A stretch of 64,000 bases of DNA from Tetramitus jugosus (taxonomy: Eukaryota > Protista > Heterolobosea), in contig OW569344.1 in assembly GCA_937625935.1 (NCBI GenBank), forward strand, positions 620,001-684,000, in the 5' to 3' direction. The notes beneath the pieces were generated by a model. It saw only the letters and a list, made by a program, of their open reading frames with translations. It had not been told where the DNA came from and made no database searches. Positions 54,979-64,000 of this stretch are shown here, piece after piece; positions within the stretch are counted from its first letter, which is position 1; each line of letters starts with the position of its first letter. The translations under genes and the position numbers were made by a program.

Positions 54979-57294
54979 ATGTGTTTTTTCTTTGCACACA
55001 AACAAGCAGATATTGGAGCTGATGTTCCCACTATTGCTCTACCGATTGAAACGTGGGCTGAATCACCAAAGTGGGAGAAACGAAACAAGAAGAAACATTC
55101 AACTCGGACGAGTCGTTGTTTGCGGTTTTCCTGGAGCTTTGGCACTGCATTTCTTTTCACAATCTTAGCTGCTCTGATAGCAGTCGGTGTGTCAGTGTGG
55201 CTCTTCAACTACGCACTGTATCGTCATAATGTGAATTCTATGGCCAAAGAAGCGAGAAGACTTCTCTTGTCGAGGATCGAGTTCCATGTCAACAATTTTG
55301 TCTCTAGAGGTACTTCAATTATCGAAGTGCTGAATTCCGAGTTTCAATGGACAGATGGCATAGGCAAGAGTAATCTGAGCACAGAAAAACTCAACGAAAA
55401 TCTCCCTTTCATCCTCATGTTTAGTCATCGAACGAATGACGAGTTTGGAGGTGTATGGTTCGGGACGGAGCAAGATGTTCTCAGGGGATGGGTTCTGAAC
55501 GACACTGTTGTTCCTCCTACAAAATTTCAACTAGTGTCATCAAACGGTGAAGGATTGTTGAAGTGTTACTTGTTCAATGACAAACTCGATAGAGCTCCAA
55601 GAGCGGCGTTCGAGCTCGAGAATTACTATCCAACAAGGAGGATTTGGTACTTGCGTCCCAAGACTGGTTTTCGGAGGCGATGGACACCTGTTTTTGCAGT
55701 ACTATCAGATCCCCACTTCCTATCAGTGTCTATCACTATGCCTTACTATAATGTGACAACAAACGAGTTTGTTGGCGTACTGGCCGTTCCGTTTGACCTA
55801 AGAACAATATCAAACTTCTTGAAGTCATTACAAACCGTGAAAGGGAGCCGGATTTTCATTGTTGAGAAGGGATTTGGTTTAGTGGCCGCGAGTCAAGGCC
55901 CGACCTCAAACACTACGATTCCTTCTTCGCCATCAACTTTAAGTGCTCTAAATAGCTCTGACCTACTAATCAGTGAAACAGCCAAGAAAATAACAGAAAC
56001 ATGGAGCGAAGAAGTAATATTCAATACAACCTACAAAGAGCTAAGATTTCGAGACTCCATGGGAGTGGCTCAAATCGCAACTGTGATTGGTATTCACGAT
56101 GAAAATGATTTAAATTGGGCAATAGGTTTGGTTGTGTCGGAAAAGGTTATTATGAGAGCGGTCATTACTTCCAATAGAGTTTCAGCTATTGTGAGCGGAA
56201 GTTGTATTGCAGTTGCATTGATTGTTGCCTTACTATTGAGCACCATAATATCTTTGCCTCTAATCGAGATTTACAAAGAGTTGAATATTATTTCAAAGAT
56301 GAAGTTTAAGGCTACTAGGACTTATCACTCCTTTAAGTTTAATGAGGTCGAGATCATGATTAATTCGATAGAGCAGTTAAAGAGGGGATTACAGTGTTTT
56401 GACGCATTCGTTCCTTCAGATGTTGTGAGAGTACTATTTCAGAATAATACGAGCGCTCGCTTAGGAGTTGTGAGAAAGAGAATCACAATTATGTTTGTTG
56501 ATATCACCTTTGAACAGACCAAGGAACTGTCGCCGACTTCATTTGTCGAGATTTTACAACAATTATCAATCTCACTGTCCCAGGTTGCTTCAGATCTTGG
56601 TGGAGTAGTCGACAAATACTTCAACGAATGTATAATGTTCCTATTCAATGCCCCATCTGATTTATTGTTCCACGAGTTACGGGCCGTTCAATCCTCGATG
56701 CAAATGATGAAGAAAATAGAAGAGTTAAACTCCCATTGGAAGTCATCAGAACTGCCCATTGTGTCTATTAGAGTAGGTATCAATACTGACAATTGTTTGG
56801 TGGGGAATATAGGAAGTACGACACGTGTCAGCTACACTGCTTTGGGAGATGCAGTAAATGTTGCAAGCAGGCTTGTCTCTCTAAACACCCGATATGACAC
56901 CCATACGATCATTGGGCCTAGTACGAAGGAAGCAACTGAAGAGATTTATGTTTGCAAGTGGCTGTCATGTTTATGTGTCAAGGGGAAGTGTGAACCCTGT
57001 ATGTATCCCTTTTCTTTTCTTGTTACATTGAGTTTGCAATTTCTAATCCATCTGAGAGTAGTGAATGTATACGAGCTAGTTGCAGAAAGAACAAGAGCTA
57101 CGGAGGATCAAAAGGATACAGAGGCTTTGTGTGAGAAAATTAAGAGATACATTGATGCTGAGGATTATCAAGCTGCTTTAACTCATGTACAGGAAATACT
57201 CGAGAAAAATCCGGAAGACAAGGCTGCTCTTGAGCTTCAACAGAGACTGACCAGTTCCAATTTCTGTCCCTTTCTCCAAATTCGAGACAAATAA
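54979..57294 (+). CDS. Receptor-type class III nucleotide cyclase (TM-Cache-TM-HAMP-cyclase); probable in-frame intron 56999-57061; 5' end uncertain
   Basis: YYPT.R.WY..., ITIMFVDI, RVGINT..C.VGNIGS..R..YTALGDAVNVASRL, VKGK.EP. Confidence 0.88.
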   Translation: MCFFFAHKQADIGADVPTIALPIETWAESPKWEKRNKKKHSTRTSRCLRFSWSFGTAFLFTILAALIAVGVSVWLFNYALYRHNVNSMAKEARRLLLSRIEFHVNNFVSRGTSIIEVLNSEFQWTDGIGKSNLSTEKLNENLPFILMFSHRTNDEFGGVWFGTEQDVLRGWVLNDTVVPPTKFQLVSSNGEGLLKCYLFNDKLDRAPRAAFELENYYPTRRIWYLRPKTGFRRRWTPVFAVLSDPHFLSVSITMPYYNVTTNEFVGVLAVPFDLRTISNFLKSLQTVKGSRIFIVEKGFGLVAASQGPTSNTTIPSSPSTLSALNSSDLLISETAKKITETWSEEVIFNTTYKELRFRDSMGVAQIATVIGIHDENDLNWAIGLVVSEKVIMRAVITSNRVSAIVSGSCIAVALIVALLLSTIISLPLIEIYKELNIISKMKFKATRTYHSFKFNEVEIMINSIEQLKRGLQCFDAFVPSDVVRVLFQNNTSARLGVVRKRITIMFVDITFEQTKELSPTSFVEILQQLSISLSQVASDLGGVVDKYFNECIMFLFNAPSDLLFHELRAVQSSMQMMKKIEELNSHWKSSELPIVSIRVGINTDNCLVGNIGSTTRVSYTALGDAVNVASRLVSLNTRYDTHTIIGPSTKEATEEIYVCKWLSCLCVKGKCEPCMYPFSFLVTLSLQFLIHLRVVNVYELVAERTRATEDQKDTEALCEKIKRYIDAEDYQAALTHVQEILEKNPEDKAALELQQRLTSSNFCPFLQIRDK

Positions 57295-57392: not shown

Positions 57393-58466
57393 TTAGTTGT
57401 CGATACTATAACCTTTTCCTAAGAAATACAAGTACTGATTGGTCTGAGTGCTTGTCCCAATGAAATTATGAGGGAAGATTACATTTGGAGTGCTTTTGCT
57501 GACTTCATTCAATCTGTTGACCTGATCTGAAGTTAACTTGACATCAACCGCCCGCATCAGATCAGCAATTTGATCTGAATTTCTTGGTCCAACAATAGCA
57601 GATGGAACACCAGATACTTGAAGCATCCATGCTACAGCTACTTGTGCGGGAGAAACTCCCAACTCATCGGCCACTTTCAACACCTCGTCCTGAATGACAT
57701 AATCCTCCTCAGTCATTGAGACTTGTCTCTTTGAATCTGCAGAAACTTCGTTCCTCCTTTTACTTCCTGTTAGCTTACCTTGACCGAGTACGCCCCATGG
57801 AACAACACCGAGATTCAACTTGCGTGACATTGGTAATATATCTTGTTCTAATGAACGGTCATTCAGAGCATATCTTGCCTGGAAGGCAACAAATGGAGAC
57901 CATCCCTTCTCATCCGCAAAAGTGTTTGCGATGGAAACTTGCCATGCAGGAACGTCACTAATCGCCAAATGCAAGACCTTTCCACTGTTGACTAGAATCT
58001 GTAAGTCTCTAATCAGATCTTTGATATCTAGAGTGAAATCCCAGAAATGAACATAGTACAGATCAATATAATCCAGTTGCAATCTCTTCAAAGAAGCATC
58101 CAAAGCAGCAACAAAGTTCTTCTTGTGGTTGCCGGCTTGATTTGGATCAGTGCTCATTGGTCCAGTGTATTTCGTGGCAATCACCAACTTTTCTCTTGGG
58201 ATGTTATGCTTCTTGATCACACGACCGATAATCTCCTCAGATTGACCCAAGTGATAAAAGTTGGCCGTGTCAATAAAATTTCCTCCATGTTCAATGTACT
58301 TGAGAATGATCTTTTCGGATTCCTCTTCAGTGGCAGAGACGCCCATCTTTTCAGCAAATTCTGCTGTGCCAAAGTGCATGGCACCGAGACAGATTGGATG
58401 TACACGGAGTCCAGATCTTCCTAAGATTCTGTAGGTTGGTATTCTTGATGATTGTTCAGATGACAT
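57393..58466 (-). CDS. Aldo-keto reductase (aryl-alcohol dehydrogenase-like)
   Basis: LGRSGLRV..ICLGAM.FG, GGNFIDTAN.Y, ATKY, SL.RLQ.DYIDL.YVH. Start at MSSEQ. Confidence 0.92.
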   Translation of the reverse strand: MSSEQSSRIPTYRILGRSGLRVHPICLGAMHFGTAEFAEKMGVSATEEESEKIILKYIEHGGNFIDTANFYHLGQSEEIIGRVIKKHNIPREKLVIATKYTGPMSTDPNQAGNHKKNFVAALDASLKRLQLDYIDLYYVHFWDFTLDIKDLIRDLQILVNSGKVLHLAISDVPAWQVSIANTFADEKGWSPFVAFQARYALNDRSLEQDILPMSRKLNLGVVPWGVLGQGKLTGSKRRNEVSADSKRQVSMTEEDYVIQDEVLKVADELGVSPAQVAVAWMLQVSGVPSAIVGPRNSDQIADLMRAVDVKLTSDQVNRLNEVSKSTPNVIFPHNFIGTSTQTNQYLYFLGKGYSIDN

Positions 58467-58702
58467 GGTGGTGTGCTTGTTTCTTGGTTGTTTTAGCTCA
58501 AGTAACTTCCTTTTTGAAGCGATCGCCAAGTCGTAGATCTTCTGCGCACAAAGTGCGGTGTAATAAGCCGGAATGGCGATCTGCCGTTGGGTCCAGGGAG
58601 TTTTAATCACCAATCTACAGAGTTGTTGAATACACTTTAGTTTGAGCAAATAGTTGATATCAGTTTGACTCTTTATTCCTTTGCCATCACTAGATGATGC
58701 AT

Positions 58703-60391
58703 CTATACAGCTGTTAACAAGAGCGACATAACCACTAGAGTAACCAACCAAACTGCAGAACCAATTGGTGACAACCCAGAAGTTCCAGATGTATGGACAG
58801 GGGAAGTAGTTGGATTATGAGAAGTTACCGGATCATGAGAGGTGACTGGATCAGGAGAAGCAACTGGATCAGCAACACAAGAGGGCTTGAACTTTGTTAG
58901 AATGCTGGATGAAGGAGGGGTCGTGAAAGGATCGTTGTACTTCTTAGAATCAATGAATCTGATTGAGTCAATGTACAATGTCCTCATCTTAGATTGATCA
59001 ATCAGTAAGATGGAGAATCCACTGATTGATTGAATGCCAGAGAAATTCATATCGGTCAATGGAACACGAACTCTGGACCAAGCTGTTGAATCGATCTTGT
59101 AGTTTGAAATATATTTCTGAGTGACGTCAATACTGCAGATTCGAGTGTAATTCATATCGACCCACTGGAAGTTGATCTTTGCTTCTCCATCAGCACTCTT
59201 GACAAAGAATTCAAAGTAATCATACTTTGAAGTATCAATCTCAGGACTTCCTCTGTAGTTTGGATCAGTAGGGTTGAGCTTTGCATGATTGATCGTGACT
59301 GCTCCTTTTTGGATTTCAAGTTTAAGAGAATGGGCTCCACACAATGGTTGCTCAATGCTCGAAAAATTGGCCACAGGTTTCACTTCTCCCGCTGGCCACA
59401 CAGTAGTATAAAATCCCCATGTTGGCCAACCAGGCAGATCAGATCTCTCGTTATAAATTTTGAAATAATCCGATTGATTGATTGCACAGGCTGTTTGAAG
59501 AGTTGGGATGATAGGTGGCAGATCACACGATGAACCTGAACACATGATGTGGCCCATTAACTCTCCATTCGGATTCTTCTTTGTTGAAACCTTCACATAC
59601 AACTCGCCTTTGACCAGAGCTGTCCATTCACTATGTGATAGCTGTACAGAGGCACGAATAGGGCTATAGTAACTATTTTTCAATTCAATAGTACGTTGTT
59701 GTACTTTTGGATCCCCTTGTAATAGCGTCACACCAGTTGCAATTTCAGATAGGTCATGGTGAATGTTGAACTGCAATTCTCTTCGATTGGGAAGAAGATA
59801 GAAGAAACCAACACCACTACCACTACTTTCAACTCTACCAGGCATTTGACATGCTTGAAGCATAGCTTGATAGGCATTTTCATTGGTCTGTATCTGAGCA
59901 GGGATTGCGACCTTGTCAGAGCTGAGAGTGCAGTTGGTACATGATGCCTTGACAGTTAAACTGATACCATTGTAGGTGTAATCTACAAAACCCCAGCGCT
60001 CTGAGTAAAAAGCTTCGGTACTACGGAGATAGTTCTCAAACTTCAAATAGAGGTGCTCTCCAATCGTATCATAGTAGTAGGTAGCGTATTCCAAATCGCT
60101 AAGCTTGAACACTTGTTTCAATGAGGAAGGAGGTCCTTGCCATTTGGATGAGGTAACATTAAATGGAAGGGCACTTTGAGGGTATGGAATAGCGAGAACA
60201 ATCCAATCTCCGAGAGCTGTACTATCCATTTTGATCACTAAATTCTGAGGAGTTGGTGTATTACCTCTGTACCTAACTGTGTAACCTGTTCTAGCTCTGA
60301 TGTTACCCATTAATTGGAATTCGTCTGAGCCATGGTATCGTCCAAAGAGATCCGTTTTCTCATTCTGGGATCCTAGCTTAAGGATGTAGTT
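58703..60391 (-). pseudogene. 3' part of an interrupted TMEM2/CEMIP-like surface protein with CHRD-like domain, S/T/P stalk and GPI-type C-terminus
   Basis: GYTVRY....P..L.I.M.....GDWIVLAIPYP resembles CEMIP GYTIHW...P..L.I.L.....GDWIRVGLCYP. L..GELYV.V.T..NPNGE..G.I is CHRD-like; PVTSHD repeats. The ORF-track ATG at 60409 lies inside the inserted element. Confidence 0.8.
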
Positions 60392-60510
60392 CGGTGAAAT
60401 AAAACCCATAATAAAAAAATTATGATTTCCCGAGAAGACACCTTAACGCTCCTACATAATCTGGACTTACATAGCAGCTTGATGGAGTGAGCCTTGGAGG
60501 TGTTCCACCA
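60377..60510 (-). ncRNA. Predicted Fanzor omegaRNA (scaffold about 60510-60392 plus flank-derived guide of about 15 nt)
   Basis: Nested stems: GGUGGA/UUCACC (60509-504 with 60398-393), ACACCU/AGGUGU, GCUC/GAGC, CUAUGUAA/UUAUGUAG, and the CAUAAU/AUUAUG hairpin. It overlaps the Fanzor 3' end and abuts the element boundary. Confidence 0.7.
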
Positions 60511-62353
60511 TTTTGATTAATTCTTTTGCGACCTTTTTCTTCCTCTTGAAGGCATCGGGACGTGACTGTCCATCCATTTCTGTTCTCAGTAGATGGAGCA
60601 TGTTCTTGGCCGCATTGATGTCTCTGTTGTGAGTCACTAAACATTTAGTGGTTGCACACTGTTTAACTCCTCGGACGACAGAGACATTCAACGTTCCATT
60701 CTTGTCTATTCTCTTATGCTTGACTGGCTTGAGTTGACAATGACAGCCATTGCAAATCTGAGAAGTCTTACACTCATCCACCATATGGACTTGGAAATGC
60801 TCAGTCATTCTCTTCAACAATTTGACTTTAGGACTAACCATGTTACCCTTTTAACTATTCTTGAATCCACCATTGCCCATCCCAATCAACATACTTCTTC
60901 CTTTCGACTTCTTTTTCAAATCATTCTTCACACCAGAAAGAGTCTTGTCTCTCATCATGTAACTGTCCCAATTCAGTTTCTTCACCTTTGAAGAACAATA
61001 AAAGTCCAACAAATCTTCCTCGACTTCCAAAACCGAATCAATATGTTCTAGGTACAAGTCATTAGACGAGACATTAGAAGTCTTGATCGAGTTGTGGAGT
61101 TGATCAACATTCTTCCCACTCTTCTCATTCCACTGCTTTTGGAATTTCAATAATCGTTTCTTGTTCTTGGAATGGTGAGAGAGGTGATGGTAGGTCTTGT
61201 TACTCAACTCCCATTTGTTACCATCATTATCAACACAAGACAATAAGGTAACAATACCGGGATCAATGCCCACCAAGTATTCGGATTGAGGGATTGGAGG
61301 TTTTGGATCAACCTTTTTCTTCTTGGGTGCCTTTTCCTCTGACTTCTTCTTTTTCACCTTGTGGTTCACATGGTTATCAATCAATTGATGTCTAACAACC
61401 ACAGAGGCCTGTATACCATCTGTTCTCACAGAGTCAATCTGCAACTTTCTTGAACCGACATTCAAACAATCAAGGTTGTATGAAAACACTGGGCCTTTTT
61501 GGATCTTGTCTAACAATTTTTGAAATTCTTTGGTTCCAATTTCGATACATCTACACCTAAAATGACACTGTGGCAACAAAGTAAATGATTTCCTGTCTTT
61601 AGAGATCAAATATTTTTGAATGTGCCAGTAAAGTTTGAGAATTTGATTAGGATTCTTTTCGATGTAATCTTCACTCATTGGTTCTTTTGTGCCAACAACG
61701 TCATTCACTTCTTTGATCAATTGAGGGATTAAATAAATCAATTCTTGAGGAGGCAGTTTTTGAAAGTCATACACCTCAGCCGTAAAGATTAATTTTCTAA
61801 TGATGTAATCAATCACTCTTCTTTGTTCACTTTTTGGAATCTTCAAAGATGGATCAATCAATTCTTCCATTCTCAGTCTCAAATAGCGCTTCAATCTTTG
61901 CTCCAAAGTGAATTGAAACATATTGGAGATATTAGTGGCCAATGATTTGGCAACATAATTGAATGAATCTGAATAGCCATTGTATATTTTTCGCAACTTT
62001 TCGATTTCATCATTCATGTTGATGGTGGCATTGATTCTTTCAACATTCTTGGTTCTATCAACAGAGTTTCTTCCAAAAAGGACAGAACAAATTCTTTGAA
62101 TGAAGCCTTGATTCACCTCAGGAATATTCACTCGTGATTCCAAGCACTTCAAAACAAAGGAATTGAGGAGCCTAGAGATTCTAATAGCTGCTCTAGTAAT
62201 TCCTTTTGCTCTTTCTTCAATCACTGGAACTAAAGAAGGATGATTCTTCAATAGAGATTTCAAACCAACCTTGATGACATAATGAGAAGAATAGTTTTCC
62301 TTATTGACTCTTGTTCTCTTCCTCTTCCCACTCATGGGTACTCCTCGAGGCAT
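60467..62353 (-). pseudogene. Fanzor1-type (TnpB-related) RNA-guided endonuclease, about 628 codons, single in-frame TAA at 60853-60851
   Basis: VIKVGL, FTLLP, RTDG, RuvC-I VGIDPG, GNGGF....KG....P, RuvC-II VDE..TS, Zn finger CNGC...CATTKC, RuvC-III NRDINAA.NM. NLS-like KRKR and PKKKKV. The two ORF-track pieces are in the same frame. Confidence 0.92.
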
Positions 62354-62396
62354 ACTAATGGTTGTTTGGTTTGATAAAAATGAGATATGATTGTTA

Positions 62397-62444
62397 TTGT
62401 ATTTGTTGTATGGTGTATTTGTTGTGTGTTGTATTTGTTGTGTG
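62397..62444. repeat. Three tandem 16-nt repeats in the Fanzor 5' leader
   Basis: TTGTATTTGTTGTATG / GTGTATTTGTTGTGTG / TTGTATTTGTTGTGTG. Confidence 0.85.
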
Positions 62445-62732
62445 AGTTGAATCAAACAGCGAAAAAGACAGCGCTTTTTAAACCGAGGTAGATGGCCGTT
62501 GCCGTTGTAAAGACAGTCTCAACGGAAATTGTTACAACTGCACCAATTCCGCAGCTTAGAGAAAACATTTATTGTATTTTTTTATAATATATCCACCTAC
62601 CTATCCAATCTTGAACCAACGAAAAACTTTCTCTCTGACACGACAACAACAACGAAAAACACAAGTCGCACAACGAACATCAACAACAACAACCAAATCA
62701 ATCAAAAAAGATGGAGAGTCGACAAGAGGTGT

Positions 62733-63439
62733 CTATTTGCAGTGTGCATTGTAGATTCTCTGAGCAAGTTTCAAGTAGGAGAATACAAGCGGTACCAATG
62801 TGTATTGAATTCTCTTGACACCACCCTGACCAAAGTGCTTTCTGGCTGCGGCCAAAACTTTAAACAATTGATCAGTATCGCTATTGTCAAACAAATGAAC
62901 CAATCTGGCAATCAAGTTCTGTTCTTCTTCGAAATCTTCGAGCAATGTTGCAGCTATTGGTGAGTCGTCAGAAGGTGAGAATGTTGTCTGGTCTTCCTCA
63001 TCCTTCAACAGTGGACGAATCAAATCAAACAGTTTGTTTACTTGTTCAAATGTTGAAATCTTGTGTCCATTGTCAAGTGCGCATCTCACAATGCTCAGTG
63101 CAATAAACTTTCTCTGTTCATATCCAAGAGAATGAATAATATCACCATACTTCTCCAACTTCAAAACTGTTAGCACATTGTTGTATGACTCGAGTGGCAC
63201 CAACAACAATCGCTTCAACATGTCTACAATTTCATCTGAAGCAAGTGCAGTGATATTCAATTGACTAGCAATGTTATTAATAATCTTGTTGACATAGTCA
63301 GTGTTATCAGGATATGTTTGAAGAGCAAGTGTCATCAATGAGATCTGAATACTCAAGTTATCGGACAATTCAACATCTCTCTAATGGTATCAATAGTAGG
63401 ACAGAATTTGACAAACATCAGAAAACTCACACTCATCAT
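62733..63439 (-). pseudogene. VPS35: Captured internal fragment of retromer subunit Vps35, with upstream intron 63430-63381
   Basis: QISL..LAL..YPD..DYV.K, LL..P...Y....VL.L..Y, DFEEEQ.L.ARLVH, ARKHFG.GG..RI..TL.PLVF. Lacks the N-terminal and C-terminal thirds of Vps35. Confidence 0.9.
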
Positions 63440-63525
63440 CAGGTCACTCGCTCTCACGATGTCCTTCAGAGTGTTTGTTTTCTGTTTTTTGCAAGTTTTT
63501 TTTGATGAAAAAAATCAATGAACAA

Positions 63526-63846
63526 ATGGGAAAACAAGGAAAAGGCGCCAAAAGAAGACATAACCAACACCAACAATTGGTAAAGTTTGGAGTCAAAAGA
63601 AAAGTAAGAATAACCGATATACATATTGATTTATTTGTGTATCTAGTTGGTTCGTTCCTTGGTGTAGAAGATGTGTTGAATTTGGTATTGACGTGTCGGG
63701 ATTTTCGATCTTCGATAGTCAATAATCTATCAACAATAAGGTCTTATATGGACAATTTGTACTCACACTGTTTGGCCGTTTGCAAGTCAGGCTTACCGTG
63801 CAAATTGCAAAGGAAATTTTTTGTGCCTGTTTTGATTGCTTGTTGA
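63526..63846 (+). pseudogene. Captured, truncated F-box-like N-terminal fragment
   Basis: ITDIHIDLFVYLVGSFLGVEDVLNLVLTCRDFR fits the F-box pattern; its stop codon falls in the element's terminal hairpin. Confidence 0.55.
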
Positions 63847-63863
63847 ATCAACAAGTACTTGAC

Positions 63864-64000
63864 CGCAGTTCCGTTTAGTCCGGTGTGCTCTGTCAAATCG
63901 GCTTTTGGATCTTGAATAACCAATTGAACAAAACCTTCACCAAAGTATGGACAGGAATATCCGTTCCATTCTGGTTTAGCAGTACATGTCTTGGATGTCA
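63864..64000 (-). pseudogene. Upstream part of the interrupted TMEM2/CEMIP-like gene; continues beyond the window
   Basis: Manual translation TSKTCTAKPEWNGYSCPYFGEGFVQLVIQDPKADLTEHTGLNGTA resembles CEMIP C..VPDW.G.IC...YAQ.YIQ, which precedes the GYTIHW motif. Confidence 0.8.

Follow-up and report, generated by a model that had tools for sequence, protein, structure and literature searches.

A decayed Fanzor1 element from a family with Kolobok-type TTAA ends, captured host-gene pieces and exchanged nuclease cores in Tetramitus jugosus

A window of 64,000 nucleotides (nt) from Tetramitus jugosus (contig OW569344.1, positions 620,001–684,000; GC about 41%) carries near its end a block in which a Fanzor gene, an internal fragment of Vps35 and an F-box-like fragment lie between two parts of one host gene. 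We think it likely that this block is the decayed member of a young, multi-copy, non-autonomous family of cut-and-paste elements, and we infer a mechanism of homing and break repair for the family. The evidence comes from metagenome contigs and from contigs of four public runs, the latter placed on window positions 58700–64000 (5301 letters) at a threshold of 85% identity, with depth not taken as copy number. The features are collected in Table 1.

Comparison with these contigs gives an extent of 60382–63867 for the window copy, and in the four runs other copies depart from the window sequence at two places, 60377/60378 and 63867. The first is an element end. The cargo-bearing metagenome copy L008 opens with TTAA plus 12 bp that together are the exact reverse complement of window positions 60378–60393. 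Across the family the termini read TTAA, GG...CC, TTAA, with terminal inverted repeats (TIRs) of 10–12 bp in two variants, TIR-A and TIR-B. A second end type, GGTGGCGGTC, is found at the start of L001 (and partly of L011) and at the end of L001, L002 and L025, where it is followed by TTAA and then by differing flanks. L025 follows the window scaffold up to 60406 and then passes into this second end type. The TTAA thus recurs at the 3′ end of the window copy, L001, L002 and L025 in front of four distinct flanks, as well as at the 5′ end of L008; L001 is bordered by TCAA and TTAA. Ahead of the terminal TTAA, 22 nt vary among copies; an internal guide was considered there, but these are two alternative TIR-bearing ends.

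The second place, 63867, is a truncation. A 5′ TIR is present in L008, L001 and L011, and beyond the point equivalent to 63867 the contigs L007, L008 and L011 run on, either for 207 nt to TIR-A or for at least 119 nt towards TIR-B. The window copy is therefore missing about 120–210 nt of element at its 5′ end, TIR included. L001 is a minimal element of 2.17 kb with the Fanzor gene alone between its TIRs.

The sequence-only reading had placed the element at 60392–63865, inserted at a CG without a target-site duplication (TSD) and using the next 15 nt as guide. Removal of that block does leave an open host frame, and its ends show an 8/10 inverted match. We nevertheless regard this model as scarcely tenable: the supposed flank at 60378–60391 is the reverse complement of the L008 5′ end, other copies diverge at the two points given above, and real empty alleles hold about 42 nt that a CG join omits. 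The target is TTAA, the proposed guide is really TIR, and the predicted guide starts at 60377. Ends of the CG or IS607 type are likewise ruled out by L008, L019 and L025 together with the divergence points of the other copies. An IS607EU/Fanzor2 element, which would have neither TIR nor TSD, cross over at a dinucleotide and use a serine recombinase with a Fanzor2 protein, was also rejected, as TIR and TTAA are present and the protein is a Fanzor1.

The family has Kolobok-type ends, with both the TTAA duplication and 5′-RR/YY-3′ termini. Kolobok elements, which have been reported from Naegleria, duplicate a TTAA target and end in 5′-RR...YY-3′, and piggyBac elements use the same target with 5′-YY...RR-3′ (CC...GG) termini (PMC9587614). 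TTAA with GG...CC is thus the published Kolobok signature and distinct from piggyBac; an assignment to the latter, needing CC...GG, was discarded. Neither the list of open reading frames (ORFs) nor Pfam gives a transposase frame in the block, as the earlier reading had also concluded, and this supports non-autonomous status. Proof of Kolobok membership would require a transposase, so the assignment is putative. Two metagenome loci (L003 1725–3897 and L004 2375–4556) hold Fanzors of the same clade with a common, different 3′ end that has neither TTAA nor a GG...CC TIR, and the clade may also ride another type of transposon. A viral origin was set aside, as two scans of viral contigs gave no close relatives; the metagenome scan gave just three weak loci.

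Table 1. Features of the Fanzor1 element and its insertion site (window coordinates)
Feature	Position	Strand	Evidence or remark
Host gene, 3′ part: CEMIP domain X, CHRD, CBM30-like, C-terminal hydrophobic tail	58703..60377	-	Pfam; 95.8% nt identity to L019
Predicted guide, host flank after TTAA	60362..60377	-	Inferred from Fanzor1 architecture (PMC10432273)
TTAA target site, 3′ TSD copy	60378..60381	.	Contig loose ends at 60377/60378, X5 and X11
Predicted omegaRNA scaffold, after Fanzor stop	60378..60466	-	Last stem pairs internal arm with TIR/TTAA; RNA contig on 60428–60642
3′ TIR variant A, 12 bp, element end CC	60382..60393	-	16/16 match, TTAA included, to L008 5′ end
C-terminal Fanzor segment and scaffold, shared among copies with different cores (98–100% identity)	60406..60730	-	Joint 60730–60867 in X3 and X11
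Fanzor1 gene, 628 codons, in-frame TAA at 60851–60853 (codon 501)	60467..62353	-	ORF, Pfam, profile searches
Exchangeable Fanzor core (REC/WED/RuvC-I/II), 61–70% nt identity to L006, L007, L009, L010	60731..62413	-	
Spacer, probable Fanzor promoter/5′ untranslated region; 16-bp tandem repeat (62397–62444) at upstream swap point	62354..62732	-	
Internal Vps35 exon, captured; 215 codons matching human residues 341–542	62733..63380	-	Pfam E=1e-44 (62736–63380)
Retained GT-AG intron, 50 nt (47–50 nt in other copies)	63381..63430	-	Exon start matches native Vps35 L023
Captured 5′ part of F-box-like gene, host-derived to about 63816	63505..63846	+	Pfam E=0.03 only
Truncation junction, 5′ TIR missing	63867..63868	.	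Loose ends at 63867 in X5, X3 and X11; X20 RNA contig stops there
Host gene, upstream part, runs off window	63868..64000	-	98.5% identity to L019 734–866

That the two flanks belong to one gene, apparently encoding a G8/TMEM2-like surface protein, had been proposed from the window alone and is now established by empty-site contigs that join them. Contigs of runs X3 and X11 connect 63868 to 60360 or 60362, and L019 contains an empty allele in full, the only one read throughout. Between the two flank points L019 has 57 nt. Its first 42 nt are without a match in the window, and host DNA of about this length was thus lost together with the 5′ TIR; the remaining 15 match window 60363–60377 in inverted orientation. 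Identity to the window resumes 18 nt (L019, X3) or 16 nt (X11) after the TTAA, and the predicted guide stretch is altered in these empty alleles. Reported cut distances after the target-adjacent motif (TAM) are 16–17 and 20–21 nt for SpuFz1 and 14–17 nt for GtFz1 (PMC10432273). The altered alleles would fit a scar of cleavage or excision, which is suggestive only: two or three alleles are involved, and a shuffle test on the 15-nt inversion overstates its significance because the stretch is near-palindromic. L019 also shows two apparent frameshifts near short homopolymers (at about 640 and at 867–925), from either decay of the allele or sequencing errors. A paralog of the host gene occurs in runs X20 and X3, with about 88% identity at window 59030–59252; the gene is thus one of a family and could be dispensable.

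The protein is, by profile and by predicted structure, a Fanzor1 with an SpuFz1-type fold. A family profile matches three solved Fanzor1 proteins (SpuFz1, GtFz1 and PpFz1) with E values of 1e-97 to 1e-72, against 2e-11 for the mimivirus Fanzor2. A structure model of the intact relative P0001, 56% identical to the window Fanzor (predicted local distance difference test score 91), gives template-modelling (TM) scores of 0.61–0.68 with Fanzor1 and 0.23 with Fanzor2, and on this model the protein has the enlarged REC/WED architecture of SpuFz1, GtFz1 and PpFz1 and not that of Fanzor2 or TnpB. The best solved match of P0001 is SpuFz1 (E 2e-15), which the N-terminal piece of the window Fanzor also matches (E 1e-6); the window protein was translated through its stop with X, and the pieces on either side of the stop were searched separately. 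Pfam gives a weak OrfB_IS605 match and a Cas12f1-like TNB match (E 1e-8). The motifs LLP259, TDG311, D364, E527, a C4 zinc finger (C534/C537/C566/C571) and D578 can all be read. The RuvC triad D364, E527 and D578 has its catalytic E just ahead of the zinc finger, the Fanzor1 arrangement, in which this residue lies about six positions before the finger (PMC13565253). Close relatives (55–65% identity) occur in few metagenome contigs only. The earlier assignment to Fanzor1 instead of Fanzor2 is thus borne out, as are the ORF and its motifs, but the description had omitted the in-frame TAA.

This stop (60851–60853) is a sense codon in all covering contigs of X3 and X5, and X3 includes a gap-free contig of 1558 nt with the same core type as the window. 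An alternative genetic code was excluded, as a neighbouring ORF stops at TAA and the other copies have a sense codon. Since the 5′ TIR has been lost and the stop is absent from other copies, the window copy is immobile by its own ends, cannot yield a complete nuclease and is probably nuclease-dead. On these sequence comparisons the family has members with open frames and the window copy is a decayed relic. Over the cargo the window copy differs from the others by about 1%, and the others differ among themselves by 0.1–0.8%. Contigs of X5 and X3 also contain joints at which about 1.5 kb of core is left out (60807–62314 and 60761–62307); these are copies with an internal deletion in which the scaffold is retained, similar to ghost loci. 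A dip in depth over the core was considered as internal deletion only; it mostly reflects diverged cores that were not placed at the 85% threshold, although deletion joints exist too.

The Fanzor gene is a mosaic among copies. Over the cargo and over 60730–60406, L006 matches the window at 96–100% identity, but over the Fanzor core at 61–70% (up to 78% in one bin). At the protein level the L006 product (P0021) has a core 78% identical to P0001 and 60% identical to the window protein; after residue 542 it is 100% identical to the window and 64% to P0001. L025 and runs X3 and X11 switch at the same point, so that the breakpoint is identical in independent assemblies and runs, and an upstream switch lies in the 16-bp tandem repeat near 62414. 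Fanzor cores, TIRs and cargo therefore recombine between copies; trees of the separate regions were poorly resolved, and the mosaic rests on pairwise identities. Part of the TNB domain and RuvC-III lie in the retained segment; in solved Fanzor1 structures these contact stem-loop 1 of the omegaRNA (PMC11423790), and linkage alone could also keep them together. In L016 (40–624), a Fanzor fragment stops close to the swap point, at about the position of window 60697, and gives way to unrelated sequence.

The mosaic also bears on the idea that the Fanzor is carried along passively, in the same way as the Vps35 piece, the altered empty alleles being transposase footprints or the result of slippage at a quasi-palindrome. 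In its favor, the window copy is dead, the altered stretch is a near-palindrome to which a direct alignment (13/17) also fits, and the Vps35 cargo carries no selection signal. Open frames and catalytic residues have nonetheless been kept in every one of the cores, although these have diverged at about 40% of their residues, a sign of selection for function, and the minimal relative L001 has kept only the Fanzor between its TIRs. We consider a passive Fanzor unlikely.

The cargo lies within the shared boundaries, because L006 links it to the Fanzor gene and the 3′ scaffold, and L008 and L011 have a 5′ TIR upstream of it. Common limits that leave the cargo out would have refuted the sequence-only reading, which passes this check. 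The Vps35 piece occurs in 11 other contigs from soil, compost and water at about 99% identity (4–6 differences from the window), most of which also contain the F-box-like ORF; in five of the 11 the cargo is joined to a Fanzor. The sequence-only reading was thus right that an internal Vps35 fragment is present and that Pack-like cargo moves with the element. Cargo-bearing copies and copies with differing flanks were found among the metagenome contigs; a transposase that would mobilise them was not found. Of the F-box-like fragment, the plus-strand ORF stands, whereas its domain match falls under the curated Pfam cut-off. In the native Vps35 of another eukaryote (L023) an exon begins at the codon homologous to the intron position; because the GT-AG intron was retained at this shared position, the piece was captured from DNA. 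The nearest native Vps35 found is 45–53% identical and comes from another organism. Selection on the Vps35 cargo could not be read from its nine variants (five replacement, four silent), which are too few for a signal. An oligo-dT run is dense over 62594–63478, intron included, and far denser there than over the Fanzor gene; DNA carry-over may contribute, and neither strand nor level is readable from such contigs. An in-frame pair of ATG codons directly precedes the intron. The searches covered the Vps35 cargo unspliced and the host gene in its two separate parts.

Two further variants of the cargo region were seen. In X5 and X20, sequence returns from 63505–63513 to 63378, probably a tandem duplication of 63378–63513 in some copies, and in an X11 contig a match to the spacer at 62625–62714 gives way to sequence of another kind; this variant element either lacks the Vps35 piece or has different cargo.

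The F-box frame extends, in L006 and L012, into a CCCH finger and a chromo-like stretch (L012 1–431; L006 1–5), whereas the window version is cut near 63816. This stretch is probably more of the source gene. It could instead be taken as another 5′ junction, one with no TIR close by, and would then favor the alternative that the window copy never moved whole and was copied into a double-strand break by gap repair. The 5′ truncation with about 42 nt of host DNA lost and the altered empty alleles are compatible with such copying. Yet the 3′ junction is exact at the boundary of TIR and TTAA, as a transposase would leave it, and L006 and L012 are better read as a longer F-box capture. Such an origin for the window copy seems to us rather improbable.

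The putative omegaRNA follows the Fanzor stop. The 89 nt after the stop fold to a long stem in which an internal arm pairs with the TIR, and in the window copy and L002 with the terminal TTAA as well. Ends from four copies give a similar long terminal stem, the flanks differing after TTAA. Compared with shuffles, the fold z scores are −1.0 (window), −1.7 (L025), −2.1 (L001) and −6.5 (L002), so that the stem is clearly better, and significant, only in L002. Rfam gave nothing significant, and an alignment-based RNA fold on three ends gave no usable covariation. A 3′ TSD within the omegaRNA scaffold has been described for Fanzors (PMC13565253). By analogy with characterized Fanzor1 loci, we predict a guide starting at 60377 and TTAA as TAM.

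A mechanism for the family can be proposed as follows. A DDE transposase encoded elsewhere, most likely of Kolobok type, would have placed a complete copy at a TTAA of the host gene. The 5′ TIR would then have been deleted along with about 42 nt of host DNA, and the nonsense change would have come after. Intact copies would make Fanzor1, which, with TTAA as TAM and a guide derived from the flank, could cut sites vacated by excision (restorative homing), in line with the homing model for Fanzor (PMC13565253). Repair of the breaks from non-allelic copies or unrelated DNA, with template switching, would lead to capture of cargo, swapped cores and TIRs, and internal deletions. The omegaRNA of the window copy could still be used in trans. 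The full proposal, in which Kolobok-type transposons of a culturable amoeba carry an active Fanzor1 that cuts vacated TTAA sites in nature, with repair driving host-gene capture and a cassette-like exchange of cores ahead of a constant C-terminal/omegaRNA module and the scars conferring resistance, is tentative, and we hold it to be possible though doubtful.

Several points weigh against our account of a mobile family with a decayed copy in the window. (i) The window copy has TTAA on one side only, and the element encodes no cognate transposase. (ii) L019 is rearranged, frameshifted and without an intact TTAA, and the pre-insertion allele is not among the contigs. (iii) The window omegaRNA folds no better than shuffles, and TAM and nuclease activity are predictions. 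(iv) The junction evidence consists of short-read contigs only, and no listed record spans the element. The last point could suggest that the junctions or core swaps are assembly artefacts at repeats. Against this, the swap point recurs in L006, L025 and runs X3 and X11, L005, L006, L007, L009, L010 and L014, from different samples, link the cargo to a second core, and the empty-site contigs join both flanks. We judge artefacts to be very unlikely.

For the native role of Fanzors in eukaryotes the leading model is restorative homing, which rests, in the literature covered, on prokaryotic TnpB. Many near-identical copies, together with filled and empty alleles in wild samples, would allow direct testing of that model, and there is probably a cultured strain with an assembly at chromosome level. 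The intact copies elsewhere, and not the window relic, are suited to such work. If homing is correct, the changes in the empty alleles would mark the cut site as scars of natural resistance. The core swaps seen in nature show what portions of a Fanzor1 may be exchanged on a single omegaRNA, a point of interest for the design of editors.

Two genes neighbor the insertion locus in the window, a membrane nucleotide-cyclase-like gene (54979–57294, plus strand; probable intron near 57000) and an aldo-keto reductase (57393–58478, minus strand), the latter being the gene whose ORF stops at TAA.

How does the family compare with known systems? Fanzor hosts listed in 2026 are Mariner, Sola2, MuDR, Harbinger, Helitron, Crypton, hAT, EnSpm and piggyBac (PMC13565253); Kolobok is not among them, and the present family would add Kolobok-type ends. 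It shares with Kolobok the TTAA duplication and RR...YY termini, but a Kolobok transposase is absent from the element and did not turn up elsewhere. In the literature searched we found no pairing of Fanzor with Tetramitus, a single paper that names both Fanzor and Kolobok but does not list the two together, and no description of Fanzor elements with cargo from host genes or with exchanged cores (Repbase lay outside this scope); extra genes between Fanzor TIRs have been noted (PMC10432273). Pack-MULE, Pack-TIR and Pack-TYPE elements (PMC8277862, PMC8903248) are likewise non-autonomous TIR elements with host-gene fragments; the top matches listed for them report no RNA-guided nuclease, and the present family is in a protist. 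GtFz1 of Guillardia theta (PMC10432273, PMC11423790) is also a Fanzor1 with a TTAA TAM (predicted here), cutting 14–17 nt after it, but its loci seem to be without inverted repeats and identity is 14%. The closest parallel is SPu-1, the prototype of a transposase-less Fanzor1 TIR element (PMC3627910), with SpuFz1 of Spizellomyces punctatus (PMC3627910, PMC10432273). As here, a Fanzor1 of about 630 residues is the sole enzyme between TIRs, there is no transposase, and the omegaRNA (predicted here) overlaps the 3′ TIR; SpuFz1 is the best match in both sequence and fold (TM 0.68). SPu-1 differs in its TA target and 30–33-bp TIRs, against TTAA and 10–12-bp GG...CC TIRs, in the captured host-gene pieces and exchanged cores of the present family, and in an identity of about 18%. 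The family thus appears to work like SPu-1, with Kolobok-type ends.

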